A model generated the notes under the pieces. That model was not told where the DNA came from. It saw nothing but the letters and a program-made list of their open reading frames with translations, and made no database searches. A stretch of DNA of 64,000 bases, taken from the NCBI GenBank assembly GCA_964304625.1, contig OZ199838.1, positions 16,723,469 to 16,787,468 on the forward strand, read 5' to 3'. The stretch is from Kudoa neothunni (lineage: Eukaryota; Animalia; Cnidaria). Numbering within the stretch: position 1 is the stretch's first letter; each line of letters begins with the position of its first letter. The position numbers and the translations under genes are program-made. Shown here piece by piece: positions 5,800 through 60,300 of this stretch.

Positions 5800-7220
5800 T
5801 GCTATTAAATATTGAATTTGGAATTTCTTATTCTGCGACTGCGACTGCGACTGTGACTGTGACTATGACGTGATCAATGTCAGTATTAATCGGGACGACA
5901 CTGCGTTCAATAAAATTTTTCGTTTCTAACGTATTTTTTAAAAAATTAGCCCCGTCCCAAGCTACATAATCCATGTAGAAATATGTTTGTGTGCGCACTG
6001 CCGTTAAAAAACCTTCTTATGTTTATATTTTATTTGGTTCAACAATTATTGCAACCATTTAGAGAAACTATAATCTCTGAACAATATTAACTTCTCAAAA
6101 TCACATGACTTTAAGCGATTGCGGACCTTTCGCGATGTTAATCCAACCCGTGAGACATGCTTGTCTTTTACATTTCGCATAACTCACAGGGATAGAATAA
6201 ATTAACCTGTAAGATGTTTAAGGTTAGATTGATCACAATAAATTAGAGGATTATCGCATATTTTTGAAATAGATTCGTTTAAATAATCTCCTATTTCTTC
6301 CCTATATATGATATATGATATGTGATGTGATATATGATATGTGATGTGATATATGATGTGATATATGATGTGATATATGATGTGATATATGATATGTGAT
6401 GTGATATATGATGTGATATATGATATGATATGTGATGTGATATATGATGTGATATATGATATGTGATGTGATATGTGATGTGATATATGATATGTGATGT
6501 GATATATGATGTGATATATGATATGTGATGTGATATATGATATGTGATGTGATATATGATATGTGATGTGATATATGATATGTGATGTGATATGTGATGT
6601 GATATATGATATGTGATGTGATATATGATATGTGATGTGTGATGCGTGATGCGTGATGTGTACGGTGTACGACGATAAAAAGTGGATCAGTAATATACAT
6701 GAGTCTTCTTTCTCGACAAAGCTTAGGTTGACTTAGAGTGGAGTCAGAGAAGACATTATTAATTTGCATATTTGAATGTTTAATTTTGAAAAAATCTAAA
6801 ATTGTGAAAAAAGTGTCTATAATTACGTTTTTAACTTCATCATTATGTGTAATCCACTTGAAACAGTCAAACTTTTTCGAATTAGGAGGAAAGATAGGTG
6901 CGATAACATGTGCCGTTGTTAATTTAGAAAAGAATTCAAGCTATATACCACCCTCTAAAAATTTCAACAAAAATTCATTCATTTCGATCGGTCAAGTATG
7001 TGCAAAATAATTCATTTCAGTATACTTTGACATAGCCATTCTTCCATTCCATGCCCCATACATATCATGATTTTGATAAAGTGATCCATATTTCATATTT
7101 CACTCCCAGATAAAATATTTCTTTTAATTCAAACTGATCTGCAGTAGTCTCCTTCAACTGATCCTTATAATTAGTGATATGTTTAATTTTGGGTCTTGTA
7201 GTCTGTTTAAAATTGGACAT
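5800..7220 (-). pseudogene. Degraded spliced gene of unknown product
   Basis: ATG at 7220 and exon-like blocks bounded by GT/AG (e.g. EKEDSCILLIHFLSS|EEIGDYLNESISKICDNPLIYC across the satellite-filled intron). Interrupted by in-frame stops and a frameshift. No recognisable family. Confidence 0.35.
6303..6660. repeat. Compound microsatellite of GATAT/GATGT/GATATAT/GATATGT units
   Basis: Direct reading; produces the spurious HITYHI ORF. Confidence 0.95.
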
Positions 7221-11709: not shown

Positions 11710-14700
11710 ATGTATTATTTTGAAGGATTAATAGTGCAGTTAGCCCTATATTTGATACTGTGTAAATTTTGCGTGTAGATTGGTTGAAAATCGGTAATAG
11801 ATTATATTTTGTAGTTTCAAAGTTCGAGTGTGAAGAAGAGCTCCATTTTAGTATTTTAAATGATGGCACAATGGAGTTGCAAACTAAGGGCGGAGATTAC
11901 TCCATTGATGACCAACTGTGTTATTTTCGATTCGGAGTAGAAACCGACGGTGGAGGATTTGAATTTGTCGACCTGCCCAACTGCCCCAATTCCAAAGAGT
12001 CGGATAAAGGAAAGTGTATTACAGATTGTTACAACGAAAGCTATTCCATACCTCCAGCTGTATTGCCAGCCAAGCTCAAATACATAAGAATAATATCGGC
12101 AAGCGATACGGAACTGTTGTTAAATTCGAAAGGAAAAATTCTCACTTTTTCCCTCAAAAGGGTTATCGGTATATTTTTTATATTGCATTTATTTGTATCT
12201 TCTCTCTTAAATTTGAAAATTTAAGAGTCGTTTTATAAAGTCGGCAATACACATAATTTAAACACCGTTTAAAAATTTTGGTAGCCCCCAAAAGAGGACC
12301 ATAATCATAAATTTTACCAATATAATAGAATTTAAAAATATTTCAATCATCCAATTTTAAATTTATATAATTTGAATGAAACATATTTATAATTAAAGTG
12401 TTATTCTGTTTTATATTTTTCGGGCATTCTTGCACTTATCATGTTTTTTATATTAACTCTCTAATGCAGGCAGGCAGGGGTTCTCAATCGTTTTTTCAAA
12501 TTTACCTCCTTAACTTGGAAGCCGAATCCATATTTACTTTAAGATTTTTTTACACCGGTTTAGCTATAGTAGAGGCTATTTGCAAGCTAAATTCTAAAAG
12601 GCATGTACACCTGTGCAATGACAATCTCTAATCCCATCAACTCTTATTCATAAGCTGTATACAGATTGGATTTTTTAAGTTTTGCCACATTAAATTATTT
12701 CTGACCCATCCTCCACTCTTAGGAACTATAATTAATTAGAAATACTCAAAACTAATGGCACTTGAATAATATTTACCATGAAAATAGTCATTTTAAGAAT
12801 TTCCGCCTAATTCTTATTGAGTTTAGCAGCCATGAATAATATGATTCCCTGGAAATCCTAAAGTACGTCACAAACACATAATGAAGTAATTTCCCACCGG
12901 TTGAGAATCCCTACTCTAATGTACTAAAAATTGGCTGCATCCCGATGAATTTTGAGGTAAAAAATTACACCATATTTTTATTTCTCCATTCAAACCATAA
13001 AAATTATCTGATTCCAGAAAATAAAAATAGACAAAATCCCAAAGCTATATTCAACTGTAAAATAACTAACATCCCCAGTAGTAATCCTCATAATCCTACG
13101 AAACCTGTATTCGTTAAAATCCGCCATGACAACTTTTGACTGAAGCTTAATTTTTTAATAGATTTCATATTTTTATCATGTAATAAATATTTTAATTTTT
13201 ATTTGCCCAACAAAATATAACATTTAATGAGAATAAGATTTTCAAACACTCAGAATGAATTTTGCAACGGTGTTTCGTAAATCTGAAACAAATAGTAGTG
13301 GGTTTCTCATCAATTTTCCGTAAACATCATTCAAACCTTGAAGACACTGTTCATTCATTTGGTGTGCTGAGTTATAACGAAATAGATAAGGTCGAGCTCG
13401 TAGGATTTTGGACTTCACGGATGTTTCTTTCCATTAATGGAAAGATATAGTAACTTTGCAATATTTTTAAAAACTCAATCCTAAGCGTATTATGTCCTGA
13501 AATTTTTTTTATGTAAAACGTATATTTAAATAATAACTCTATCAAATAGAAAAATCCCATTATAGGCGGTCATTACTGATTGTGGATTGACCTGAATTCT
13601 CAAAGTTTGCAATTTCGTCCGATTCTTACGGCATATCAGTTGTAACGTGTTCATAATCACTTTAAAAGAATTTGATTAATCATTTTAACTACTATCGGCG
13701 AAATCCATCTCCATTATCGCAATGATAAAATTAAAAAACAAAGACACGTGATCGCCTCTATTGGTAATAACCGTATAACTTTAAATTTATCCGTCAAATA
13801 AACCTAAAATTTTATTTATGTAATAATTATTATTTTATCTATCAGCTGGATTGAAAAAAATCTGGGGTAATTTTTTACCCTAACAAATCAATTGGAGCGT
13901 AAATTTGTAATAATTTTATATTTTTAGTTATAATATTTTAAAATAATATATTTCTCACCTTTTCGGATGACTATAAAAAACCCTTATCCTACGATGAGAA
14001 AACAAATCATATACAACCAAAAACTTTTTGTTGGTGTAAAAATTTATCCCAAATTCATTAGAGGGTTAATTATTCTTTTACAAATAATTCTTGCTTATTC
14101 TTATTCCGACTAGGTATATATCGTTGATTTTAGTTTATATATATTATATCGATGATCAATTATATTTTCTTGTTTGTAATTTGTTATCTGAATAAAATGC
14201 TTAATCATAGAAATTTTATTTAAAAAATTAGTCGAGCGACAAGGTGTCTTTAAATATAATGAAAAGTATTTTTACCAGTTTAAATGTCAATAATGGCCAG
14301 AGTCCTATAGTTGTGTCTATGCCAGGGAAGTTTCATCACATTTCTTATATATTAGCGCGATGAGTAAGTTTAAGACAATACAGTAAGGTCTCGATATTGC
14401 GTAGTAAACTGGGGCCTGAGCTTTTACCACCCAATATTGAGTTTTGCGCGTACGCGGAGTATCAATTTTTTATTTTTAAACAGAGGAATTATCTTTTTTG
14501 TTTTAATTATTCAATTAAGAATGTGAACAGCGTTAGTCTAACATTATAGGAACTTTTCTTATTTATTTCGCGAACTCTTGATCAAGATTTTAACATATCA
14601 AGGAGAGTTGAAGACATCTAGCCATGTTTATAAATTATATTTAACGGAAAAATCATTAATTTCTCTAAATTAGACAGTCTATAATGTGATGACAGGTTTT

Positions 14701-17700
14701 TTTATTGATTCATCTCTTTTTATTTTACTTTACTTATCCCTCATTGCATATGTTCGTTGAGTGCAGTGTTCATAAAAAATTATACCTAATCATAAACAAT
14801 CTTATCATCAACGCTCTCCGCTTTTCCACGGAGGGTGAATTTTTAAAATAAAAGCGATTTTTGAAATTTTCTAGCAAACCTTTGGTTCAATTGAAACCGG
14901 CGATTTTAAGATCATCAGTAAAAAGTTGTCTTTTCAGTAATCAAAAACTCTATAATATTTTTCTTTTTTTGGTATCTGACATTATCCGGCCATAAAACTC
15001 AATTTCAAGTTGGTAATATTTTGCACTCTTAATCCTTTTACGGTTTGAAGCAACGCTGGAGTTCATTGTATCAGATTAATTAGATACAATTCTATTAAGA
15101 GAAGAAAAACCTATTCTAATTTTGATAAAACGCACATTAACAGAATACATGATATTCTATGGCACTCTAGAGTCGTTTGTTGACGTTTTAGATTGATTTA
15201 ATGGAACCATAATATTGAATAATTACAATTTTCAATCAAAATTTCTTCCTCCTCTCACAATGCCAAACGTTCGAGTGTGAAATTTAGTGGATTGGTCGGA
15301 TTAAAATTTGAGGCAAATACTGCCCGATAGCAAGACCCTGAATTTTAAAAAATTGCGTCGAATAATGGTATTTTATATTGTTTAATTAAAAGATTATATA
15401 CATCGAAAAGTGTACAATGTTGATTACTAAATTTTGAAAAAATGTCAACTGCCCTATATGGAACCTTGCAATATCGAGAGCTTACTTTATTTAATTTGGT
15501 TAGAACGTATATCGTAGAATGTCTTATGAGTAATATTTTTGTGTCTTAGCTCAAGATACAGCCGAAATAATTTCTCGTCATACTATATTTTTATTCTAAA
15601 ATTCAAACTCATCATTTTAAATTTCATCCCGTTATAATTTATAACTTATAAATTAACAAGAATTAAATTTAAAAAGTTCCATCGAAAAACGGCGCGTACT
15701 GTATGTATAATCACATGATCTAATTAACTTGGTAATTTCCTGATTTAATTCAAAAAAATTTAGGAAAACTTTAGGTCGTTAAATTTTCAAAAATACTATA
15801 AAATGGATAATTTAATTTACCACAATATCAATACAGTGGTATGATATCTAAAGGTGAACCCTGATAGTCGACATGATCAACAAACAATATTACGTTTGAA
15901 TAAACTCCATACATAATTCAATAAAGTATCCGTATTATTCCTAATTCTTGTTTTATGCTTTTATTTCAACACTATATTTAACTTTGAGGTAAATTATTGA
16001 AATATTAAATTGATTTAAGCATTATGTATATGGGCCAGTGAATACAAAGTTTATGGCCAATTCGTATAATTAATGCAGAGAAATATAATTATTATATTTT
16101 CTCCATTTTTAGATATATATATTAGCTAATTCTCTCCCTATAATTTTTTTAAATTCTTGAAAAAATTGTTAATATGGCGTTTTTCCATTTAAACCTGTCT
16201 TATCCTACCACCATTCGATGTTATGGTAAAAAATTATTTTAATTGAGGTTTATTTAAATTATAAATGGTGTAATTGTTTATTAATATTATCATTGTTGAA
16301 TTCATATTTATATAAATATTTAATATTTATAATATTTTAATTTAGAAAATACAGTATTACCTGAAGTAGAGATAAAAACAAACAGCAATGGAAGAATGTG
16401 TTTAAAAATAAAAACTTGTCCTCCAAAGGAGTGTACAATAAATTATAAGGATTCTGTTCTGGAAAAGTTCAAAAAGGGGGATACATGCGATAATGAGTCC
16501 CGTGAGTGTACTCAATATAACAATTTCCTGCCATACTATGAGGTACATTGCCAAAATCTGCCCATAATAGTGTATAACAAAGTGAACAAATACACCAATA
16601 ATTTTGAAGGTTCTAAATTGCAATTCTATCCACAACGAACAGAAGATGAAAATGCTGTTCATTTGAAATTTCAGAATTCAATGCGAGGAGAAATGTGCTT
16701 GTTCAAGTATAAACAGGGTGTAAAGGTTGGAGATGTGAATGATAACACTTGTGCGTACCAATCCAAGTGTGGAAACATTGAAGGATGTTGCTACAGTTTG
16801 TGTGATGATGTTTTCCTCAACTTTGATTATTCTCCCCCTAGCTACATAAAAGTTGTTGTTTACACACGTTTCACCATTGGAGGGGCTAATCCGAAGGAGA
16901 TATGCAGTCAATGCATACCTCAAGATAAAGAAACCACCCACAAGGCTGATTTGGGTGAGTATTTTTAGTTTTTAAGAAACTAGAATTAGACATAATTAAT
17001 AATGTTAATTCTTTTCGGGGTTTTAGTGATGTCCAAAAATCTTGTCACAAACATCACTAAAAGTGGATTTAAAATGCATGCCGAAGAATTCAAACAAAAT
17101 TCAGACAGTTTTGTTTCTGAATGCAAAATGATGTATATGAAAGCAGACCAACCTGAACCGAATGAATTAGAACCTCTCCTGTGTTTGCCTAAGGGGAAAT
17201 GTAAAACCGAATGTGGCACACTGGATGTCTACGATTTGATGTCTGGAACCAGTTTTCTTGTTCGGATGTATGACCATGGGGTGACCAATGTGCCCGATGT
17301 TCGATTTGAATATTTTGTGGTGACAAGTAATATTTAGTGTTTAATTTGATTTTTCATCGAAAAAATAGAGCCAGCTTCAGAAGACTCAAGCAACAACTAC
17401 GACACATCAATACCACCTACTTCTACATATACTGGTTTTGTTGTTGGTCTAAATAATGCCAACGACAAAGTCACCAATCCATTAAAATATCCATCATGTA
17501 GGTATTTTGTGAGTGAGGCAGAGAAAGGTGCGTTCACCCCAGCAATGTGTGATAACCAAAGGTCATGCATGGGGTTTTGCAATGAACAGCTCACAATTGT
17601 TGGTCTAAAACACAGCCATACCTATGATATCAAGGTCGATTCAAATAAATATCTAGGTTCTTACTTATATAAAAACGTGAAAACATGTAAATCAATAGTC

Positions 17701-19897
17701 CTTATACCACAAATTTAGTCACTACTTTATATTAATTTAGTGTCAGTTAATGCAAAAATCACTTCCAGTTTCGAAGAAACCCAGCTCATCATTGAAGCTA
17801 GTTTCACATCTGAGGGAAAATCCATTCAAACGAAATGTGAATGGATTATCTACAATGTGGGTAACAGTGAACCCGTTGAGATATCACGTTGCACTCAAAA
17901 TCAAAATTGTGATCCACTCCCAGATTGTGGTTCTATTAGAATTGAAAATATCGACCCCAATGCTAAATTTGAGGTTCATGTCATTGTCCCCAAATTTGAC
18001 GATGAATTTATTCATTTAATTGATCCCTCTAGTAGTTGTGGTGAAATTTACAAGTAAATATTTTTGTTTTAGAAAACCTCCAAATATTCAAAACTGAATA
18101 CAAATACGAGGCGAATAAAAACTCCATTTCAATTGTGGGAACGATCCAACCAGAAAATGAATCTGCTATGTGTTCTATTCAATTGTTTGTTGCAGAAGAA
18201 AACAATAATGACTATGTAAAAGCTACAGAGTGTGATAGCACTGAAGACAACAGCTGTTTTTCTCCTCAAAAATGCTCAAAGATTGTTATCAACAAAGTTC
18301 TGCCAGCTAAAAAATATAAAGTTCTAATTACGGTAGCTGAAACCAAGTTATTTGCCGAAATTGTTCTCACAACAACCTCTTCAAGTACCGTCAAATTCGA
18401 CTAAAACCTTTTTTATTGTCTATTAGTTTTCGATAAATTTTAATGTTTATATAAAAAATAGATGGAAATGTTTCTCTTAGAAATAATAAGTTTTGAATAA
18501 ATAGATTCTATATTATTTTCGTGATTTTATTAACATTTAATATTTTAAAATTTTATAATAATTATCATGTTTATAATATCAAATAGTTGATGCGACATTT
18601 ACACACGAATACAATGAAAAACAGCTGGTGATTACCGGAAAACTGAATCCTGAATACGAATCCTCTAAATGTGAATGGGTTTTAAAGATTAAACAGAATG
18701 AAACACTCGAAGATTTCAAAAGTTGTAGCTCAGAAACTAAAAACAACTGCGACGAATTACCTCTATGCTCTTCGATTACAATTGAAGATGTTGAGCCCCA
18801 ACAAGACTATCAGATAGAAATAAAAGTTGAAGGGACGGACAAAAAATTTTACTACAACATTATAAAAGGTATTATTTAACTATGGACCCATTTTAACTAA
18901 AGTCTCGTCAAATAGTGCAATTGGAAAGCATATCATTTGAAATTTATCATCTGTATTATGGTGATGGTTTGTTGGTTGGCACCAAGACCGAACCCCCAAG
19001 TACACAGACGTTCAAGTGTGGCTGGATTCTCGAAGTAAAGAACGCAGATCAAACATATACTGCCTCGCAGAAATGTGTCGAAGATGATCTTGAAGCTTGT
19101 GGTGAATTTCCCTCTTGTGACAAAATATCTATTAAAAATGTGGATAAAAGGCAAAGTTATCGTTTGACAATTACTTACACGAGTTATTTGAATTCACCCA
19201 AAATCATCGACATTACACCAGGTTTCCAGTGTACCTTCTGTTGGAATATAATCTAGATTTTTAGGTAGCGGAAAGGGTTCACTTGAACTTCCTTACACGA
19301 TACATACCAACCAACTCTCAATCAATACGCAAATGTTTCCCGTGATTGACGATGCAAAATGTTCGTGGATGGTTGAAACTCGAAATGAGGATGACTCCTT
19401 TATTGTGGAAAAACAATGTTCAACAGAATCTACGCAAGATTGTGCAGAGTTACCTTATTGTAATAATTTAGCGATTCCAGAGTTAACAGGTGAAGCCACA
19501 TATCGTGTTACTGTCACAGTTGATGGCACTTCGCTCTCAAATAGCTTCACACTTGCAGTCAGCTCAACAGATGAACCCAATGAGGAGGATGAGAGTAATT
19601 ATTCAATGTTAACTCAATTCTTAAAACAATCTTTTAGAGTCGGATTTACCCAATGAAGCATCTAACGATATAAAGTATTTTTAGAACTGTACATGTCTAC
19701 TATTTATACTTTTTAGGTTAGGTAAAAGCGCCATTTTCATTATCATGTAATTTAATCAAATTATAATTCTTGCACTAACTTAAAATTAAAGTGGGGTTTC
19801 GGCAGGACTCTTACTAATGGCCATCACCTGTGTCATAATATGCATGAGGCGTAGCTCTCGTGGCGGTGATGGCTTAGTTATGAGTGACGAATATTAA
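11710..19897 (+). CDS. 1111-aa type I membrane protein with ~10 tandem 4-Cys FnIII-like modules
   Basis: Exons 11710-11761, 11815-12168, 16346-16954, 17027-17326, 17369-17686, 17741-18040, 18073-18384, 18587-18868, 18916-19221, 19265-19594, 19638-19674, 19717-19746 and 19792-19897. They total 3336 nt, are all GT-AG and stay in frame. Signal peptide MYYFEGLIVQLALYLILFSKFEC; TM AIFIIIGVSAGLLLMAITCVIIC; tail MRRSSRGGDGLVMSDEY. Joining exons 1-2 across the 4.2-kb intron is the least certain step. Confidence 0.85.
12467..12913. mobile_element. hAT (Buster/Charlie-type) MITE in intron 2 of the surface-protein gene
   Basis: TIRs caggggttctcaatcg / cggttgagaatcccta; perfect 8-bp TSD ctctaatg (12459-12466, 12914-12921); caggcagg stutter at the left end. 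Confidence 0.85.
14381..15487 (-). mobile_element. pogo/Tigger internally deleted element (copy 1)
   Basis: TIRs cagtaaggtctcgatattgc / gcaatatcgagagcttactt flanked by TA. Minus-strand remnant TKGLLENFKNRF...LRGKAESVDD resembles the CENP-B-type HTH (GWL..FK.R...GE..SVD). Confidence 0.85.
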
Positions 19898-27826: not shown

Positions 27827-29060
27827 TCATGTGAACGAGTTAAGTTTGAACTGATCAATTACTTTGACCATTTCACGACCTATAAAAGCAGGTGATTGTA
27901 CCACCTGTACCCCAGCTTCGGTGAGAGCCTGGATTTTTTCTTTGGCACCTCCTTTACCACCTGAAATTATTGCTCCGGCGTGACCCATTCTTCTTCCTGG
28001 TGGTGCAGTCACTCCAGCAATGAATGAAACCACTGGTTTTCCACCTTTGTGGTTATTTCTCTCTATGAGGTATTCGGCTGCGCGTTCTTCAGCTTGACCA
28101 CCAATCTCACCGATTAAAACTATTCCTAAATAAGTGTGTAGTCAAATTGAACACCCACAACAAAAACTACCTTTTGTGTTGGGATCTTCTAGAAATATTT
28201 CCAAACAATCAATAAAATTTGTCCCATTGAATGCATCGCCACCAATTCCTAACGCGCACACATTAAAAACCTCACCTAAAACACCTTTGGATACCGATAC
28301 AATAAGTTTGCCCCAAACCAGTGGAGGTGGTTTGATGAACAGCTTCGTAAGTGAGAGTGCCTGATCGAGAGACAATTCCTAAACATAAAATCATTAGGAT
28401 TGAACAGTTAAAGCTGAATTAATGATTGTGCGCCAAAACCTACCAATACAACCTGGTTTATGAATAAATCCAGGCATTATACCAATCTTGCATTCACCAG
28501 GCTAAACATAGATTCAAATTTTACATTAACAACAAAAATGATAGGTCACTTTAATGATGCCAGGACAATTTGGCCCCAATAAACGTGTTTTATCTTGTTG
28601 AAGGAGTCGATTTTTCACCCTAACCATATCGTGCTCTGGAATACCTTCAGTTATACAAACAACCAAAGGTATTTCTGCTTCCATTGCTTCGATTATGGCT
28701 TCGGCTGCAAACCTGGGAGGAACGAATATCATAGTGGCATCACATCCGGTGTGTTCCCGTGCTTCTTTAACTGTGGCGAAAACTGGCTTTCCAAGATGAG
28801 TGGTTCCAGCTTTTGATGGTGACACACCTCCGACAATGTTTGTGCCATACTCGATCGCCTGCTCACTGTGGAAAGTTCCTTGTTTTCCAGTGAACCCTTG
28901 GCATATGACTTTGGTGTGTTTTCCAATCTTAAGCGCTGATCGAGTAGCGTTGTACATCTGCGTGGATGATACACACCTCACTAGATACAATTGTGTGGTA
29001 TAGAAAATCTCTTCATAGAAATTTATTACTCCCTTGCAGCAACCGAACCGGTCTCAACAT
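27827..29060 (-). CDS. SUCLG1: Succinyl-CoA ligase alpha subunit, mitochondrial
   Basis: [44 protein letters not shown] and [12 protein letters not shown] (phospho-His); Arg-rich presequence exon from ATG 29060. The extreme C-terminus could be spliced differently. Confidence 0.97.
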
Positions 29061-32629: not shown

Positions 32630-35260
32630 ATGGCAAAGGTTCCCCATACAAAGTTACCCTTGTGGTCGCCGAGCGAGAACCATCATAAGAATAGCCTTTT
32701 AGGCGAGTTTTCGATTACTAATAAATGAGAAATTCAATCTTCAGTTGGGTATGTTTGACATCCCATCATACTACTGAATTAATAATTCATGATCATTTGT
32801 GCTGTAGAAAGCTACGATCAGTTGTACAATTGGAGCGTGAACCATGTGGAACAATTTTGGGAGCAATTTTTGATTTTCTCCGAAATTAAACTGCAAGACC
32901 AATATTTGGTTGTGCTTGAAAAGCATAAATCGATGAGTGATATTCCTAGATGGTTTTTAGGTTCGACATTAAATTTCACTGAGAATATTCTTCGCTATAG
33001 AGACGATAAAAATTGCGTTGATTCAGTTAAGTAAGATAGTTCTAGATCTTTTGGGTAGTGATATATTGGTGAGGGTGGAATATAGAATAAGTTGATTTCA
33101 GTAAATAATAGCATCCAATTAAGCGATGGTTTCTGTAGGTGAAAATTATTTCGCGCAAGAAGACCAATGCGACACTGGTGATTTGTTCTCCCGTGCGATA
33201 TCCATCACATACCGCCAACTCTATACTGAAACTGTACAGTTGGCGTTGAGTTTGAAAGAGTTGGGCATCAAAAACGGGGACGTTGTTGTAGGACTCGTGT
33301 CCAACCAGCATATTTGCGGTTAAGTCAGCGTTAGCATGTGCATTTATTGCGCCGTCTGGACATGTGTGTCTCCTGACAGTCAAGCTACGGTGATTTGTCT
33401 TTTAAGTGGGAATATACTAATAAATTATGACGATATAGGCCATAATTATGCGCATCAAGCAAACCATACCCAAAGCTCTAATGATTACTCCCTATGTGAC
33501 TTACAACAACAAACTTTTCTTTCAGTACGATAAACTTCAAGCTATCTTAGCTGGTTAGCATGATTACATTTGACATGTTGCCAACGACTATTTTAGAAAT
33601 TCCATCTATCAAAACAATCGTCTCAGATTTGCCACTTAAAAATGCTCCTATTCCAAAAATTCCTTCAGACATCGCAGCCGAGATGTAAACTTTAACGTTT
33701 AGGAAGCATTATTAATGTGTGAAATAGATTTTTTGTTGATCAATTTGTCAAAAGTTCTGTCGGGGCGAAGACGATGTCAGCTTAATAGATATTGAATATT
33801 TTCCATTTGATCACCCTCTCTATGTGATGTATTCGTCTGGTACAACCGGTGCTCCCAAAGGAATTGTTCATTCTGCCGGAGTAAATGGTTCTTCTTCTTC
33901 TAATAACCAAAAAGTCTAAAAATTCCATCTAGGGTACGCTTATTCAACATGTCAAAGAACACCTCCTACATAACAATCTAAACCGAGATTCCGTTTTATT
34001 TTTTTATACTATCGTATTTTACATCAGCTGCTATTAGCGACACAATCCATTTAACGATTTTATTGAAATAGTCCTCTTGGATGATGTGGAATTGGATTGT
34101 ATCGGCTTTGTTTACTGGATGCACTTTGATTCTCTACGATGGATCTCCATTCTACCCCACCCCAAATATATTCCCAGAGATAGTGGATAGATTGAAGTGA
34201 GACCACTCTCAGTTGGTTGTACTGTGATATTCTGTTGGTAGTGTTACTGTTTGGGGATGTGGTGCTGCGTATTTTCAAATGATTGAATCAAAAATTTTAA
34301 ATCCATCCGAAAAATATTCATTTAAAAATTTGGAGTGTATTTTGTCGACCGGCTCAGTTCTACCAGAACACACCTTTGAATATATTACAAAGTGTATCAA
34401 AAATGTTCAGATAGGATCTATTTCTGGAGGAACCGACATTATCTCATGTTTCATGGGAAATATCCATTGGTGGATGTCTACAGTGGTGAGCTCCAACGTC
34501 GAAATCTTGGAATGGCGGTCAATGTGTTCTGCGAAGATACCAATTGTAGAAAGAATCACCTGGATACTCCCGGAGAATTGGTCTGTGTGAAACCATTCCC
34601 TTCTATGCCAATTTACTTTATCGGTGATACTTCTCAGCGCTCCAAATACTTGGAAACCTACTTCTCAAAATATTCCGGAGTTTGGTGTCAAGGAGACTTT
34701 TGTGAGTTAAATTCTTCCACTAATGGAATCACCATCCATGGACGAAGTGATGCTACATTGAATCCTAATGGTATTCGATTTGGTAGCAGTGAGATTTACA
34801 ATATATGTAACGAGCGATATTTTTGTTGGGATTGTGGAGTTGAGGTGATTTGTTTAGTGCATTATGTGGATGAAATTTTGGATTCCTTGGTTGTTGGTCA
34901 AGAGATTTTCCCTTCAACTGAGAAATGCATCCTCTTTGTGAAATGTTCACCGTAACAATTTCATTTTATCGATTTTTGTTATTCGTTTTTGCAGAACCAC
35001 AAAGTTTGACGATAAGTTGGTCGAAAAGATAAGAACAACAATCCGAAGTCATCTTTTCTCCTCGACATTCGCCTTACAAGATATTTCGAGTATCCGACAT
35101 TCCGTATACTCTTGGTGGGAAAAAAGTGGAACTACTCATAAAAAAATATATCTCCAGAAAAATTACTTTCGATGAGGCCATGAAAAGTGGGTTCAACACT
35201 CTAAGAAACCCCACTTGCATCAAAGAATATGCTAGTTTTTTAGATAGGGGTGTTCTTTAA
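32630..35260 (+). pseudogene. AACS: Acetoacetyl-CoA synthetase, full length but with ~7 frameshifts (pseudogene or consensus errors)
   Basis: [80 protein letters not shown] and IPYTLGGKKVE; all splice sites intact. Confidence 0.9.
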
Positions 35261-36258
35261 AATGCTACCTCGTACTCTCAAACTCTCTATCGCATATGTA
35301 CAAACTATAATCTCCACATCGAATATTTTATTTTTTATTTAATATTCCCAAAGAAATTGAGCATATTTTTCTTGTAACCAATCAAAATATTCATTTGTTG
35401 CTTTGAGCAGGAAAGTAGCCGTCTACTCGATAATTGTATCTTCATTTGAGTCAAAAACTAATGAGTTCGATATTTCTTTATATTCTCCTACAGTTAGACA
35501 TATCAATTTTCTATATATTACTTGATATTTTGTTTTTAATGTTGTTCGTACTCAAAAGTGTAATCAGTTCCTGTCAAATGTTTAGAGATGTCATTTGGCC
35601 CCAATTTACTATATATTGTTATCAGTATAACTTCCTTAGAAATAATCAGCCACTATTTCGATTCCATTGTCTCTACTTTATTATCAAGGGTTTTATTGAG
35701 TTTTCGTTAGTTTCACGTCAAGGGAGATAAACATTAAAATATTAGATGATTTGGCTAACTTATAAAGATATTGAAGTCATAACCAACGCTAAAATGTGAC
35801 AAACAATTCGCCGGCCTGAAATATTTATAAAATGAACTTATAATAAATATAAATTTATATTTTTTAAACTGTGATAAAAGTGAATAATATTTCTTTTTAT
35901 TATTAAAAGGAAATTGATCGGAGCAAAATGTTAGTTAAGGGAATCGTTAAAATTTTTGCCACTTTACAATATTCGTGATGTCCCAATTTTAACTTAAGAT
36001 CAAAACATCGCAGTTGTGAACTGTGAGTGCGAGAATTCCCATGATTTAATACATGAGAAATTTTCGTAATTAATTTGACGCTTTTTCGTTAATTAACTCT
36101 GATACTAAATACCAAGATCACTTCATGTATAAAGGGTGCGACAAACGTTTATTGCATGTTTTCAAGCACAGGAGATGCGAAACTAATTGAGTTTAGAACC
36201 ACCGCTTTAAATGTTTTAGATCAGCGTTTGCCAACTAAAATTGGACTCGATCCCCCTA

Positions 36259-36307
36259 TAATAATAATAAATAATAATAATAATAATAATAATAAATAAT
36301 AATAATA

Positions 36308-36339
<32 letters not shown>

Positions 36340-36347
36340 TAATAATA

Positions 36348-36395
<48 letters not shown>

Positions 36396-36480
36396 TAATA
36401 ATAATAATAAATAATAATAATAATAATAAATAATAATAATAAATAATAATAATAAATAATAATAATAAATAATAATAATA

Positions 36481-36513
<33 letters not shown>

Positions 36514-36521
36514 TAATAATA

Positions 36522-36597
<76 letters not shown>

Positions 36598-36617
36598 TAA
36601 TAATAATAATAATAATA

Positions 36618-36650
<33 letters not shown>

Positions 36651-36847
36651 TAATAATAAATAATAATAAATAATAATAATAATAATAATAATAAATAATA
36701 ATAATAATAATAAATAATAATAATAATAATAATAAATAATAATAATAAATAATAATAAATAATAATAATAATAATAATAAATAATAATAATAAATAATAA
36801 TAAATAATAATAATAAATAATAATAATAATAATAAATAATAATAATA

Positions 36848-36883
<36 letters not shown>

Positions 36884-37088
36884 TAATAATAATAATAATA
36901 AATAATAATAATAATAATAATAAATAATAATAATAAATAATAATAATAAATAATAATAATAATAATAATAATAAATAATAATAATAATAATAATAAATAA
37001 TAATAATAATAATAATAATAAATAATAATAATAATAATAAATAATAATAATAAATAATAATAAATAATAATAATAATAAATAATAATA
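36259..37088. repeat. ~830-bp (AAT)n microsatellite with AAAT interruptions
   Basis: Direct reading. Confidence 0.98.
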
Positions 37089-48075: not shown

Positions 48076-49774
48076 ATGAATAAAGATAAATTGAAAGCAA
48101 AGTTTAGAAAAGTAAAGCAGATTTTAGGCGAGAAAACTGGCCACATCAAACAGTAATCATTCGTTTGAATATGGTTTATATGTGAAATATTAATATGAAT
48201 GCGTTGTTGATGTAGATCGGAAAAAACCACTATTTTGGGTGGTGATTATTCGAAAATTAATGTCAATTATCAAGCTTTCAAAAGTGCAATAAAAACCACA
48301 GTGAAACATTTGATCTTTTTGCTTAGTGTTGATTGTTATAGAGAAGAAAAAAAAGTAATAATCCCAACCTAAGAAACTAAATATATTATTGATTGTATAG
48401 ATCAGTCATCGAAAACAACTGGCTTACACTATCGAAAATGAATTACGTGAAATGGACAATCCCTATCTAAGGTATTTTTTGTTCATGGGATGTAGGAGAG
48501 GATTGTTCACCTAATAACTCGTAGCGCTATTCTATCAAATACAGCATCATGCTTGAAGGATATCGACGCCCAAACTCTAGAACTTGATAGCGGTATCGAA
48601 GATGAAGCTGTGATACCATTGAAACAATTTTTGGAGTTGTTTGATGCGTTGGACAAATGCAAACGAGAATTAGAAGATGAAAGAATCAATATTGATGAGT
48701 GCAAAATGAGGCTGATTTCTATAAAGAAAACTGCTGCTACTTCGGGAAGTGTTGGACCACAGACAATCGATAAAATAAAAAATGTCGAGAATGAATTTAT
48801 GGATTCAAGCGAGCGCTTCGACAACAAACAAGAAATGATGGCTATCGAATTGTTGAATTTCCTAGCCAAATGCCCCTCTATTGCAGATGTGTACATTAAG
48901 TTGATGATTCTGGAAAGTTGTAAACACAAAAATAACATCAACTCACTTCAAGGCTTTATCACCGAAATCAATGAGATTCTTAGCACATTCTCATTTGAGC
49001 CGGTTTTCGGTATGACTCTTACCGATCTCAGCAGCAAATATGGTCAAGAGATATCTGTGGTTATTGAGTGTTTTTTGAAATTCCTGATTAGAAATGATTG
49101 TTTCGAAACTACAGTAATAGATTGATTTTTGTTAATTGACTTAAAAATTAATGTATATTTTCGAATTGTTTAGGGACTTTTTCGTATAGGAAGTGAAGGT
49201 CAAAAAATTAAACAACTCAAAAACGAACTTAACAATGGAACCTTTGATTTGTCTGCGTACAGCGAGGATCTACACACAATTTGTGGTAGGTTTTGAAATG
49301 ATTTCTGATGTGGGTTATATGTTGAATATTGATGCTTTGTAGGAACACTTAAGCTGTATTTGTACGAACTTCCCGAACCTTTATTTCCAGTCGAATTTGG
49401 AGATGAAATGGTTGAAATTGCGGCGTAATTCAATTTACCCCAACCACATTTAATACAATAATTTCACATTTAGTATGGAAAAACTCGATCGTGTATTGGC
49501 TATTAACAGACTTCTTAAAGATATCCCCTCCATCAACACAACCAATCTACTCTACCTGGTTTCTTTTTTCGCTGTTATGGCTGAACACGAAGAAACCACG
49601 AGAATGTCACCCAACAGTATTGCAATCGTTGTCGCTCCAAATCTTTTACACACTTTTGACATCAGCAAAGCTATGGCTTACACCCAAGCTGCCACTGTCA
49701 TTTTTACCGATCTTATCAACAATTTTGAACTTTTATATCCTGAACTCGCTTCAAACAACGAATTTAAAACCTAA
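48076..49774 (+). CDS. N-BAR + RhoGAP protein (ARHGAP17/ARHGAP44/SH3BP1 family)
   Basis: Amphipathic N-terminus LKAKFRKVKQILGEKTG..SEKT, helical BAR region, PVFGMTL, GLFRIGSEG (arginine finger), GTLKLYLYELPEPL and TRMSPNSIAIVVAPNLL. Confidence 0.88.
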
Positions 49775-54348: not shown

Positions 54349-57300
54349 TTACATAAGATAACGCTTACAAATGAGTGTAAGCATGCGTACAATTTGACTG
54401 GAAGATTTGTCAAAGTAGTTCTCATGTTCATCGAAATTATCCATCAACTGTTCTATGCATTCAATAAACCCAACATCATGACGATGTTCAGCCACATCAA
54501 ACATAAGAAGGATTTCCTGAAGGTACCTATAACAATAGTAGTAATTGTGTTAATTGCCACACACAATCAATATTATTAATTCATTATTCCAAAATCCATA
54601 TTAAACAATCGGTATTCAAAAATAAATAAAAAAAGTAATTAAAGTAAAATTTGTAAATTTATGAGAACGTGTTAAACAATTAGCGCACAATGATACTTTT
54701 TACAATAGAAATAAAAAATGGATAAATAATTACGAGATTTTGACACTTTGGTTGGTCGTAAGATCATCTGAACAAATTTTCACAAGATAATACAATTCCT
54801 TCATTGAAAGGGAAGTAACAGGATCTTTGAGGAGTTTGGAGGGATCGAAAGAAACGCATAATCTCAAGCAGAATTCTTTGAGGCTGTTGTTCAAGCCGAC
54901 CTTGAGTGCTTTCACCAATTCGCCGCGATTTAATAAACTATGAGCAAGATCCTACACATTACGATCAACTCGTATACAGTCCAACAATGGAAACTAACCA
55001 AAGGATCTAAAGCAACAGTTGGACTGTCGTTGGATTGTGGTGGATGGTTATCGCTTGTATTAAAGCTTGAGGCTTGACTTCCAATCAAACCAGCAATAGC
55101 GGTGGTTTGATGTCGTTGAAGAGTTGCAATATTGGAGAGGATTTTGTTAGTGATATCATCTTTTAGTTGTTCCATATTGCGTCGAATCGACTCATTTGTG
55201 TTTTTCTCAATGTCACAAACATAAGTGGATAAATTTTCAACCATCCCCTCCAGTCGTCTAATGGCATCAACAGATGCATCGTTAGATTTGCCATTTATGA
55301 AATTTTTCTCAAACGAATTTAAATAGGTTTGTAAACATGCGAGATCTAAAAAAATTACATTAAAAACATTAAAAAGCATAGTATACATTCTTGGGTGCCA
55401 GTTCTGAAAGCTTTGTCAATATCAGTAAACATCTTTTGGGTTAGACGATCCATTTTTTTGACCGCACCGATTCCTGCAAGCTCTCCTGCCAATTTGCTCG
55501 TTAGATTCTTTAACAGCCTTTCAGTACGGTCCATTACAAGGCTAGCCACATTCTAGTAGCCACCATAAAGAATAATCATTACAATTAATCTCCATTTATT
55601 AATTAACAATACCTCGGCCATTTTGTTTTGATTAGCCTTTAATGATTTCAAATGGACATCCACGGCATCCAATCTCTAAATAAATACTTAAAATAATAAT
55701 TTTTTAAAACTACGTATACCTTTAATATCTTTAATGAAAGATTGGTCTCGTAATCGGAGGAGTCTCTAGAAGCTAAGCAAATATATTTTTAAAAAATTTA
55801 GTTAGGTTAACAATATACCTTTGTTTGTAGAGCAGTCGCAACGAGGTTGAGTTTTAAGTTGGTCGATTTTTTGTTTGAATTGATTTAAACTTTGATCTGA
55901 GAAAAAATACAGAATCAACACTAAAATTTATTTAGAATTACTCCACGAACGTTCAAACTTATTGAATCGTTCCTCCATTAAAGACTCTACACATTGGAGG
56001 GTGGTACAGTTGGAAGGGGCCACATTGGATGTCATATTTTCGGTGTCCTCAGTTGTTTTTTCAGTATCTTCGGTGGTTTTTTCTGAACCTGATGCTGCTG
56101 CAGGAGGAACTTCGGCCTTGTATTCGGCTGTTGTTGAGGAGTCATCAGCAAAAAGATGGTGTGGTTTGGTCATAGAATCATCAGGAGGCGATATAAAACT
56201 CTCGTGATTTCCTCCCTGTGTACATATAACGCATATAAATAACCTACTCGAAACACTATTTTACTTTTAAACCATAGGGGTCGCCTTTGAGTAATTGTGA
56301 TAAGTCGTTGTTCGTAAGAATAGGGGGGAATGACTTCATCCAAAAAACGTTTTTAATGAATAATCAAAGGTCAAAATCTAATTACCAAACCACCATCATC
56401 AGTCGTTTGATTGAATGCTTCGCTTAGAGCAGTGCAAAAGGCTGACCTGTTGCATTAAATCTCAAATAGTATGAAACAAACGAGCAAAAATTACGAATTG
56501 CACAAAGTGGAGTCAGTCTTGTCAACACCAACATCTTGATGGAATATTTTGTTAAATTCGGCTATCTCGTTGATTAACTCTTCATGATTGCCACTTGAGT
56601 TTAATACGGGAATCAAGGATTGGATCTCTCTGATCTGAGGAGAAATAAAATTTATCGCCGATGGCTTATTCTTTAGATAAAAGATGAGAATGGAAGAATT
56701 AAATATGAATAATATGCCTCAGAATGATACGAATTAGATCGACCAGATGTGTTGGAGTTGGTCAACTTGTGAACGTCTTGGAACGAGCCACCATGAAGCC
56801 CTTCATTTCCATCGTAGGGTAATCCACGACGGTTTTTCATACCAGAACTTGCACCCGTTAGATATTGATAGAAGCTATCTAGAATGGAATGGAATGTGAT
56901 TATTGTGAAAGCTCTACCGGAAAAACAACTTTCACTGTTACGTTCCTTCTCTTCGCAGCTCTCCAAGTAGAATTCAAACGAATAAAGGTTTCTAATTGAT
57001 GGTGTTAAGCAGCCGTGAAAATAAACGTTACTTTTCACACAATGCAAACATATTAACCAATTTACGACGATAACATTTAAAACCTCCGTCTCCAACCAAA
57101 CTCTTGGTGATATAAAACTCGGGATAGACAGTATAGTCGAGAATGTCAGTTTGAATTGGCATTGCACACACCTCTGAGATAAACGGAGAAATAAACTTCC
57201 ATTTGTTGCAAGTGGAATCCGATGTACTGGACATATCAGGGGATACTTTCATCGTAATATCAAACATTACGATCTATTGTTATAGAGTGAAAAAATGCAT

Positions 57301-60300
57301 ATTAATAATTGTGTTGTGAAATAACTTACGTAATGCATGTTGGTAGCCAGCATGAGTGTAGTACCGAAACTTGGTGATAATGGTCTCAATCTTAATCCAT
57401 TATCATCACTTAATTGGTCAGATCCATTCATCGACAAACTGTACAAAAATGAATGTTACATACATAATAATGAGCAGCATGAAAAACCTGATAGTTTGCA
57501 CTAATACAAAATCCATCGTGTTATACAGTTTGATAACGTTATTCGAGCTAACGAACACAACAATAGGCCAATACGATATTATGTCCTCAGTAGAAAACAT
57601 GCGAGTATCACACCAATGATGCATTATAATTGGATCACTGTTGTCGAATGGAATCATCTCACACTGAGGTTTCAAATCATCAATGATGCAAACGTTTGAC
57701 TTGGCCTCAAAATCGATCGCCCATATTTTAAATTTCCCATCCGCACCAGATGTACTCATGTATGCGGCATCGGGAGAAAGGTAACAGCTCGTAATACTAG
57801 ATTCATGCATTTTACTGATAAACGAGCGCACCAATAAACGTTCCAATGCTTTATAATCGCAGGTATCATTAATTTTTTCCAATGAAAGGTTAAACTTGCA
57901 CACAATACAACTACCATTTGTTCCATACAGAACAAATACGGAAGATTCATTCGGGGATGGAATAAGTTTGTTTTCAAAGTTCATCTTGTATTTCCACGGT
58001 TGCCAAGAAATTTGGTACACCGAATCACGAAAGGAATCATATGATTCATCTTCCGGTATCTGTATCTTGCACAATGTCACCAATCTAAATCACAATATAA
58101 TAAAATAGGTGGTGGCCAATATTAGTGATATAAATAAATTTAATAGGTGATTTTTTGTTGAGTACAGAAGAGAGAGTTTTTATGTAGAATTTATTAAAGG
58201 ATGAATAAAAAGGCAATCAGATCATAAAATTTGGGAATCAAAGAGTATTTTTTGTATTTCGCCCCATCTCAAGCTATAACTAATTTCTATGGTTAGTATA
58301 GTGACGAACAGAAAACTAATTATAAAAATTATATCGGCATAATTTCGATAGAGTAGCATTTGAATCATCAGTTAATAAAAAAATAAGATTCGTAATGCTC
58401 GTCAATAAAAAAAGAAATTAATCATACTGCAATGAAACTTCTCGACGTTAACTGACGAGTCACCCTTTTTTATTACATTTATTAAATATATAATTATTAA
58501 AAGGAAACGACTTAAGCCTAGAATAAATTATTTACGAACAAAAATCCATAAGATAATAATTATTATCATATTTTTTGTTATTTTATAACGAATTACAATT
58601 TTTTTAACTTCCATAGTGATGATTCATATAGCTCTGGCTTCGACTGTGACACTTAATTTGATGATAAATGTGAGAATCTTAGTTCTGAACTATAACAGGG
58701 TCATACTTAAGAGAATACGGACTAAACTCCATGCATTTCAAATCCGAATATAAACTAAAAATGGCTTACTACAAAGTTTGATTTTTTTCAACCAAAAGAA
58801 AACAATGCAATCGTCACGGACGACAACAAATAAAAATTACAGAAAATATTTACACAGAGTGCCAAATTTGGGCTATTTTGTTCCCTGAAAAAATAACACA
58901 TCGAGTATAGCTCTTTACATCTAATCACTTTAAAAAGATCTGGCCAAATTTCGAATGATTACAGAATTGCACTGTTTTTCAATATAATAAGGAAAATTTA
59001 ACTGATATGAAAAAACTTTGGGCAGCCGATGATTTTAGTTTTTCTGTTTGTAGGAAACCATTTAGCATTAATAGATTTAAAATGTTAAACGTATGCTCAC
59101 ATTATAACGATGATGCTAATCACTCAGTAAACTCGACTCAAGATTGATAGATCTTTAGCTATAAAACTGCTACATCTACAAATAGATAAGAAACTTAATA
59201 AATATGGTGTTCCATATATATTTTTTATAAACAAAACAAATAATGATATATTAGAACATGGGTTGGCAACCTTTTTGGATGAAGGCCCCAGCAGACATAC
59301 TATACCCAACGTCAATTAGGGCTATATTAAAATTAATTGGCCAAATAGTAAATAATCTTAATTTAAATATATAAATTAGAACTAATAAAATTCATTTAAA
59401 CTATAAAAATATCGCAATTCGAACGAATTATATAACAAGAATTTTCACTTGCAATGTAACCAATCTGTGCTTAACTTGTGAAATAACAATTTATCGGATG
59501 ATATCAATTAACATAAGTTGTATCTTTATGCCTTTTAATAAAATATTAAAATATTATACCATATAGAAACAATTTTAACAGTCATTTATTCCAGTTTTCT
59601 GCTTTAATCAAAATGAATTGGAGTCGGTTAAAATATCTAATCTATAACATTAATATTTAGAAAAACAATCTAGGTAAAAACTAAAAACTATTTACGTATT
59701 TTAGATAATAAGAAAAATTAGAGTCGGTCAATGCATCGCGGGTCGACCCATGTATTAGAAGAACGATTAATTCCAACAACAAAATAAACATGTTATATAT
59801 TCACCCACCAAATATAATAAAAAGACTAAATAACTTGCAATTCATGTTCAAATAATACTTACTGGCAAAACTCAAACATTTTATGTCATAACTTGCTTAT
59901 AAGAAGATAATACATACATGTTTGTGCATTCATTATAACGATTTTCTTTGTGGGGTCCATTGGATCCCATACACGAGATTACGTAAAGTTTTTGGTGCAT
60001 GCCACAAAGGGTTAATTAAAAAAAGAAAAAGTCATGATGACAACACCAATCATCAGAATAAAGTATTTATTCCCATTGCATATAAAGGATCTTTTGATTA
60101 TCAATTTAACGCAAACAAAGTGTTAACGATCAAAATAGCAATAAAATAAATATATTTAATAAACCTTTAGTTATTGGTCCTTCCAAATTTAATTTAAATG
60201 CCACGGAAGCATGTTTAAATTGCGCTTTCAATCACCATAGCTGTATAGCTATTATTTATAGCCATTATTTATTTATAGCTATTATATTATTATATTATTT

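Follow-up and report, generated by a model that had tools for sequence, protein, structure and literature searches.

We analyzed a 64,000-nt stretch of the genome of the myxozoan fish parasite Kudoa neothunni (the window) and describe one gene within it, located at positions 11710–19897 of the forward strand (the window gene). The reading that we favor, with a probability of roughly 0.55, is that this gene encodes a functional, single-copy, non-catalytic type I surface protein, which represents an old, constrained branch of its family and acts as an adhesion or spacer receptor. As judged from sequence, the gene belongs to a family of more than 200 members and is its conserved single-copy outlier, which a preliminary description of the locus had missed. 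The type I architecture with tandem fibronectin type III (FnIII) domains is ordinary; the cysteine quartet of the modules and the family are without description in the searchable literature, and new here is an evidently conserved, single-copy, ten-module member with apparent orthologues.

Gene model and predicted module fold

The preliminary description had joined fragmentary open reading frames (ORFs) into one protein of 1,111 amino acids. Splicing predicted from sequence and homology indeed gave 13 exons and 12 GT–AG introns in a single stop-free frame (Table 1), with a length of 1,108 amino acids, the difference being due to splice-site choice. Neither a stop nor a frameshift occurred across the 1,108 codons, and only one of the six alternative 3′ splice paths tried was open. 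Junctions 1–10 were in phase 1 and the last two in phase 2, and most introns (10 of 12) measured 41–72 nt. We regard the window gene as a real gene with an intact open frame. Module sequences were searched exon by exon, and the joined protein was used for the frame check.

The encoded protein has a predicted signal peptide, ten modules of about 100 residues (modules 2 and 3 encoded by one exon), an acidic stalk, a transmembrane (TM) helix, and a tail of 16–17 residues, an architecture anticipated in the preliminary description and borne out by the frame and by hydropathy. The N-terminal hydrophobic stretch reached a hydropathy of 1.55, and the single TM helix, at about residues 1063–1095, a maximum of 2.76, supporting a single membrane protein with type I topology. 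Four paralogues elsewhere in the genome (L040–L042 and L045) likewise have predicted phase-1 first exons that are hydrophobic and encode about 15 residues. The TM helix (19792–19850) was seen to contain GxxxG as well as a pair of cysteines close to the cytosolic end (possible dimerization and palmitoylation sites, respectively), neither of which is conserved in the outside contig L023 described below.

It is very improbable, in our judgment, that the model is partly wrong, with exons 1 and 2 belonging to another gene or being unused, or with the locus not being one expressed protein; such an error would be suggested by the 4.2 kb of intron 2, as opposed to a typical intron of 49 nt in this genome (PMC12239612). 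However, intron 2 carries dispersed repeats, to which its length is at least partly due. A repeat of about 1.16 kb (~12914–14070) has at least 40 other copies (74–83% identity) on all three chromosomes and is probably a non-autonomous transposon, and 24-nt inverted repeats at 14377–14400 and 15468–15491 (92% complementary, 1,067 nt apart) possibly mark a second old element with terminal inverted repeats. A further repeat at ~12498–12884 apparently adjoins or contains the 1.16-kb repeat. Moreover, module 1 directly preceded module 2 in every paralogue examined, and exon 2 also matched weakly upstream of module 2 in paralogues. The joining of exon 2 to exon 3 across the 4.2-kb intron is supported by protein P0032 (locus L049, dataset SRR33849685), in which modules 1–3 form one continuous ORF that no intron splits between modules 1 and 2 and whose module 1 matched exon 2 (BLASTP E 1e-9). 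That dataset contains several distinct family members (L046 and L048–L051). The 1,108 codons free of stops and frameshifts and the purifying selection reported below also speak against a faulty model.

Modules 4–10 had been said to share the spacing C-x(17-19)-C-x(5-7)-C-x(3-5)-C followed by an FnIII-like E–F strand ending. The E–F motif was present in all seven, and the spacing held in six; in module 5, 16 residues separate Cys1 and Cys2. When the spacing of module 5 was allowed, the full motif was observed seven times, far above chance: across 20,000 shuffles, one match arose in a single shuffle, and two never did. Modules 1 and 3 also had the quartet, more loosely spaced; a different cysteine pattern characterized module 2, and the E–F expression was unmatched in modules 1–3. 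An aliphatic residue (L, I, or V; L in three) occupied the E–F loop in all seven of modules 4–10, and the tyrosine corner was Y in five and F in two; the E–F loop leucine and the tyrosine corner of strand F are among the conserved Fn3 residues (PMC9546547). The strand-B Trp was absent, and the only four Trp of the protein follow Cys1 at a distance of two residues, on strand C. Cysteine content was 4.4% (49 of 1,108), with one CXXC among the ten modules.

AlphaFold2 modeled module 8 as an FnIII-type sandwich of seven strands (predicted local distance difference test score, pLDDT, 92.5). In Foldseek, FnIII domains and monobodies made up most of its best matches (E about 1e-3), and a wide structural search gave Z 7.5–8.8 with a root-mean-square deviation of 2.5–2.8 over about 80 residues; the neighbours, effectively tied, were mostly FnIII domains of fibronectin, tenascin, CD45, gp130, and CD148. 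For module 8, this agrees with the FnIII fold proposed in the preliminary description: the model was a beta-sandwich, and the top matches in the PDB were mostly FnIII. The module 2 region was also modeled with seven strands (pLDDT about 70–80), with immunoglobulin (Ig)-like matches at Z 6–8, and module 3 had low confidence in that model. No exon of the window gene matched Pfam fn3 (PF00041) at E up to 5, leaving the modules without a Pfam family. Among homologues of module 5, 7 of 13 matched fn3 weakly (best E 2.2e-4), and the module 5 profile matched the E–F strands of titin, Dscam, and fibronectin. In module 8, the cysteines lie at the start of strand C, at the end of C′, in the C′–E loop, and just before E. 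From these strand positions the four cysteines should cluster, and two disulfides per module are expected from the extracellular location and the invariance of the cysteines. By the model, the repeat is a cysteine-bearing FnIII variant with predicted disulfides.

Apparent orthologues and the gene family

An exhaustive protein search led to exon-sized ORFs and, through these, to three outside contigs. L025, from an ENA metagenome, had 78% identity over module 3 and 62% over module 4, with introns at the same places; the ratios of non-synonymous to synonymous substitution rates (dN/dS) were 0.10 and 0.13, respectively. L023 (SRR31175926, 17% GC) carries modules 5–10 in order; its two micro-exons measure 31 and 30 nt and its final exon 109 nt, and its tail ends in L-L-Y-S-D-E-F, with the stop 16–17 residues after the TM helix as in the window gene. 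L046 (SRR33849685) carries modules 4–8. When modules of the outside contigs were searched back against the genome, the window gene came first, and module 7 was a reciprocal best match. The module 7 sequences of the window gene, L023, and L046 formed a clade (support 100/99). For modules 4 and 5, alignments were concatenated for the window gene, L025, L023, L046, L048, and nine own-genome paralogues; the window gene grouped with L025 (99.6/99) and then with L023/L046/L048 (96.7/96), whereas the nine paralogues fell apart from this clade, eight of them forming a 100/100 clade of their own. We regard L023, L046, and L025 as apparent orthologues in three unrelated datasets, presumably from other myxozoans, with the proviso that the alignments are short, the branches long, and the paralogue sample small. 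The low ratios indicate that the window gene is under purifying selection.

In its own genome, no close paralogue of the window gene was found, and the gene is solitary within the window; the nearest paralogues matched module 4 with 30% identity (E 1.5e-8) and module 7 at E 2e-4. Such a conserved single-copy status speaks against the window gene acting as a variable host antigen.

The genome of K. neothunni, from yellowfin tuna, comprises 40.2 Mb (scaffold N50 12.0 Mb) in three chromosomes with a circular mitochondrion, has a GC content of 30.4%, and encodes 5,316 predicted proteins (PMC12239612). The preliminary description had suggested a lineage-specific family and proposed a search for paralogues with a profile of modules 4–10; a lineage-restricted family was supported. 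This profile gave at least 150 matches (518 candidates) on all three chromosomes, and that of the module 2+3 exon gave at least 150 matches at E 6e-61 or better (491 candidates), among the listed matches of which the window gene scored lowest despite being in the profile. Codons for the head motif CYAPC occurred 222 times, compared with 12 in a reversed control. We take about 210 genes as a floor for family size, the window gene itself being without the exact motif. K. neothunni would accordingly hold a family of at least about 210 genes, apparently undescribed. Loci L001–L007 were excluded from the local BLAST databases.

A shared plan was evident in the paralogues that were read: a signal exon is followed by module 1, one double exon for modules 2 and 3, modules 4–7, two micro-exons, and the TM exon. 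The window gene has the same order and exon layout. The sampled paralogues mostly have seven modules and a tail of mostly 3–5, mostly basic, residues after the TM helix; compared with this common form, the window gene has ten modules, with five rather than two in the distal part, lacks the module 6 insertion, and has a 16–17-residue tail. In module 6 of L033, L035, L038, L040, and L042–L045, a variable insertion of 30–80 residues, often rich in Ser, Thr, and Pro, lies between Cys2 and Cys3. L031 and L034 (C3, about 48 kb and 85 kb) have a frame break inside the module 2+3 exon and are pseudogenes or low-coverage assembly errors. Tandem clusters were seen at G000:C3:37000-380000, C2:7.96–8.20 Mb, C2:9.79–9.87 Mb, C3:9.75–9.86 Mb, and C1:16.44–16.56 and 16.85–16.92 Mb; one of these is close to where chromosome 3 starts, and two lie within 300 kb of the window.

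A family of at least about 210 copies, often in tandem clusters, invites the view that the window gene is one of many exchangeable components of a variable surface coat, serving antigenic variation or belonging to a decoy repertoire at the fish or annelid interface, and that its function would lie in diversity instead of in the binding of one fixed partner. Close paralogue pairs diverge more in distal than in membrane-proximal modules, at synonymous and non-synonymous sites alike, as in recombining antigen families; the variable module 6 loop of paralogues is in line with this, and variable surface proteins have been proposed for the myxozoan Sphaerospora molnari (10.64898/2026.02.11.705288). 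Nevertheless, we consider this unlikely for the window gene, which stands alone in the window without a close paralogue or a module 6 insertion, shows the same module order across datasets of 17–42% GC, and has a dN/dS of about 0.1. In addition, dN/dS was below 1 in all paralogue module pairs tested. A variable coat fits the family better than it fits the window gene.

Searches for named relatives agreed with the preliminary description, which had not recognized the gene: Pfam, protein, and head-exon searches returned no named family. None of the 8,000 database candidates scored was a full-length protein (370–1,170 residues) with a module 2+3 head, Atlas feature searches gave no match at 0.9 or above, a viral fold library gave generic FnIII-like matches only, and scans of JGI metagenomes found no relatives. 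Long bacterial and generic repeat proteins from the protein search were set aside as repeat-summing artefacts, and P0001, P0002, P0010, and P0019 as ordinary fn3 or bacterial Ig/cadherin-like repeats. We found no description of the family in the literature on myxozoan fibronectin or Fn3 families, most subscription journals lying outside the search, and the words "fibronectin", "transmembrane", and "immune" are absent from the genome paper (PMC12239612).

One further candidate was P0003 (locus L024, JGI sample 3300018971, intron-free). Like the window protein, it has at least eight tandem FnIII-like repeats with C-x15-C-x5-C-x2-C before an E–F motif, one TM helix, and a short basic tail (KKKD); unlike it, no module 2/3 head was seen. 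The match had E 3.6e-9 summed over seven stretches and an hhalign probability of 14%, and our searches found no relatives of P0003. Its sequence may represent the four-Cys module outside Kudoa, or convergence.

Known systems and neighbouring features

The window modules resemble FnIII domains (PF00041; fibronectin, tenascin, titin, and Dscam) in the seven-strand sandwich, the E–F aliphatic residue, the tyrosine corner, and the symmetric phase-1 module exons, but differ in matching no PF00041 profile, in lacking the strand-B Trp, in having four invariant cysteines, and in an identity of 6–15% to solved domains. CD45 has tandem FnIII domains rigidified by disulfides (PMC10815196). The window protein shares type I topology and tandem FnIII domains with CD45 and the R3 receptor protein tyrosine phosphatases (RPTPs; CD148, DEP-1), and CD45 d3–d4 was among the tied top structural matches (Z 8.2), whereas the window protein has neither a phosphatase domain (the tail being 17 residues) nor a mucin region nor a significant sequence match to them. 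We rejected membership of the receptor tyrosine phosphatases on the missing phosphatase domain and on the stop 16–17 residues after the TM helix, also seen in L023; the disulfide-rigidified rod of CD45 serves as an analogy only.

Alr of Hydractinia comprises cnidarian multigene single-pass proteins with one domain per exon and an unusual Fn3-like fold with non-canonical disulfides (PMC9546547). The likeness extends to a cnidarian multigene family, the single pass, one domain per exon, and an Fn3-like fold that cysteines brace in Alr and may brace here; unlike Alr, the window protein consists of tandem modules that keep the tyrosine corner and has its four cysteines elsewhere, a minimal tail, and another domain set. 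Alr membership was rejected by comparison with the published description: the tyrosine corner is retained, the cysteine positions differ, and the tail has a single terminal Tyr. Cysteine-braced FnIII domains are not unprecedented, as CD45 (PMC10815196) and Alr ECS (PMC9546547) attest, positions having been compared for Alr only.

The variant-specific surface proteins (VSPs) of Giardia and the VSP-like proteins of Sphaerospora molnari share with the window protein a signal peptide, a cysteine-bearing ectodomain, one TM helix, a short tail, and a place in a parasite multigene family. VSPs are defined by more than 10% Cys and more than five CXC/CXXC motifs (10.64898/2026.02.11.705288); the window protein was not assigned to them, having 4.4% Cys, about one CXXC, and an FnIII fold. 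It was likewise not assigned to the class I cytokine receptors, of which a WSxWS motif and N-terminal cysteine pairs are typical: it has four isolated Trp in all, none of them in WSxWS.

A ligand-binding co-receptor or signalling subunit that works with a separate signalling chain, possibly an RPTP-like ectodomain minus the catalytic domain, was also considered, with module-bearing adhesion G protein-coupled receptors or a kinase/phosphatase receptor as examples of a partner. The FnIII domains of CD45, CD148/PTPRJ, LAR, and gp130 among the top structural neighbours, weak Pfam Fn3_Dep-1_4th matches, a conserved tail longer than in paralogues, and the GxxxG motif and two cysteines in the TM helix would suit this role. 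However, the Z-scores are tied across FnIII domains and point to no specific kinship, catalytic and known signalling domains are missing, the 17-residue tail has no immunoreceptor tyrosine-based activation or inhibition motif (ITAM/ITIM), and GxxxG is absent from L023, making the role quite unlikely in our estimate.

The remaining genes recognized in the window are ordinary neighbours (Table 1). A tandem-repeat scan also showed a TGATA-type minisatellite at window 6306–6661, responsible for a spurious ORF of 155 aa, and, at 36258–37088, an (ATA)n microsatellite of 830 nt. Elsewhere in the genome, the 18S rRNA gene at L021 (G000:C2:5424779-5428248), the only small-subunit match from a strict search, is truncated to its 3′ part, which, together with the first internal transcribed spacer (ITS1) and 5.8S, abuts unrelated AT-rich sequence.

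Table 1. Exons of the window gene, its large intron, and neighbouring genes (positions in the window; aa, amino acids)
Feature	Position	Strand	Content
Exon 1	11710..11761	+	17 aa with the start codon; signal peptide predicted from hydropathy; followed by a phase-1 intron
Exon 2	11815..12168	+	Module 1; four-Cys quartet with looser spacing 20/10/3
Intron 2	12169..16345	+	4,177 nt; enlarged by dispersed repeats
Exon 3	16346..16954	+	Module 2 (distinct Ig-like beta-sandwich) and module 3 (four-Cys quartet); from alignment and model
Exon 4	17027..17326	+	Module 4; 62% identity to L025, dN/dS 0.13
Exon 5	17369..17686	+	Module 5; in sequence the most FnIII-like of all modules
Exon 6	17741..18031	+	Module 6; closest among L023 modules to L023 module 6
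Exon 7	18073..18384	+	Module 7; diagnostic of the long form
Exon 8	18587..18868	+	Module 8; predicted seven-strand FnIII fold
Exon 9	18916..19221	+	Module 9
Exon 10	19265..19594	+	Module 10 and start of acidic stalk
Micro-exon 11	19638..19674	+	37 nt, stalk; L023 counterpart 31 nt, paralogues 12–28 nt (predicted)
Micro-exon 12	19717..19746	+	30 nt, start of TM helix; L023 counterpart also 30 nt
Exon 13	19792..19897	+	106 nt; remainder of TM helix, basic stop-transfer residues, tail with C-terminal L-V-M-S-D-E-Y, stop codon
CoA-binding domain (succinyl-CoA synthetase alpha-like)	28526-28990	-	Ordinary neighbour
Acetoacetyl-CoA synthetase-like	34279-34955	+	Ordinary neighbour, by eye
BAR + RhoGAP	48553-49774	+	Ordinary neighbour
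Ge-1/EDC4-like WD40	54930-58083	-	Ordinary neighbour

Proposed role and significance

In the single-copy surface protein that we favor, the signal peptide would direct the ectodomain into the endoplasmic reticulum, where the four cysteines around strands C and C′ and the start of E may form two disulfides that brace each module. An FnIII domain is about 3.5 nm long, and the ten modules would together make up an extended stalk that measures roughly 35 nm and displays the conserved N-terminal head of the family (modules 1–3) away from the membrane. As an adhesion or spacer molecule, the protein would bind an invariant partner, borne either by another cell of the parasite or by host tissue, and its conserved C-terminal L-x-S-D-E-[YF] may bind a cytoplasmic trafficking or scaffold protein. 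The shorter, nearly tail-less members would have expanded to more than 200 copies, with the window gene remaining as an old, constrained branch.

Several points weigh against this proposal. The confident fold is limited to module 8, modules 1, 3–7, 9, and 10 being without one. Between 9 and 12 of the more than 210 paralogues were compared directly, and the tail motif rests on two sequences. L048, which is of shorter form and comes from a different dataset, groups with the window gene on long branches, which may reflect long-branch attraction. None of the RNA runs searched was found to contain the stretch.

Myxozoans have been described as having lost most of their genes. Carriers of the head motif nevertheless number about 4% of the approximately 5,300 predicted proteins of K. 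neothunni. We also entertain, as speculation that is probably not correct in full, that, within the largest surface-protein family of Kudoa and related myxozoans, the window gene is the conserved representative of the ancestral type, that the four-Cys FnIII subtype may predate myxozoans (P0003), and that the protein would be an invariant, essential receptor for contacts with host tissue or between cells in a cell-in-cell arrangement, with more than 200 short-tailed derivatives diversifying around it. As a slowly changing single member with apparent orthologues elsewhere, the window gene would give a fixed point from which to date the expansion and trace the original function of the family. For antibodies, diagnostics, or a vaccine against this parasite, which spoils fish muscle, it would also be preferable to its variable sister genes.

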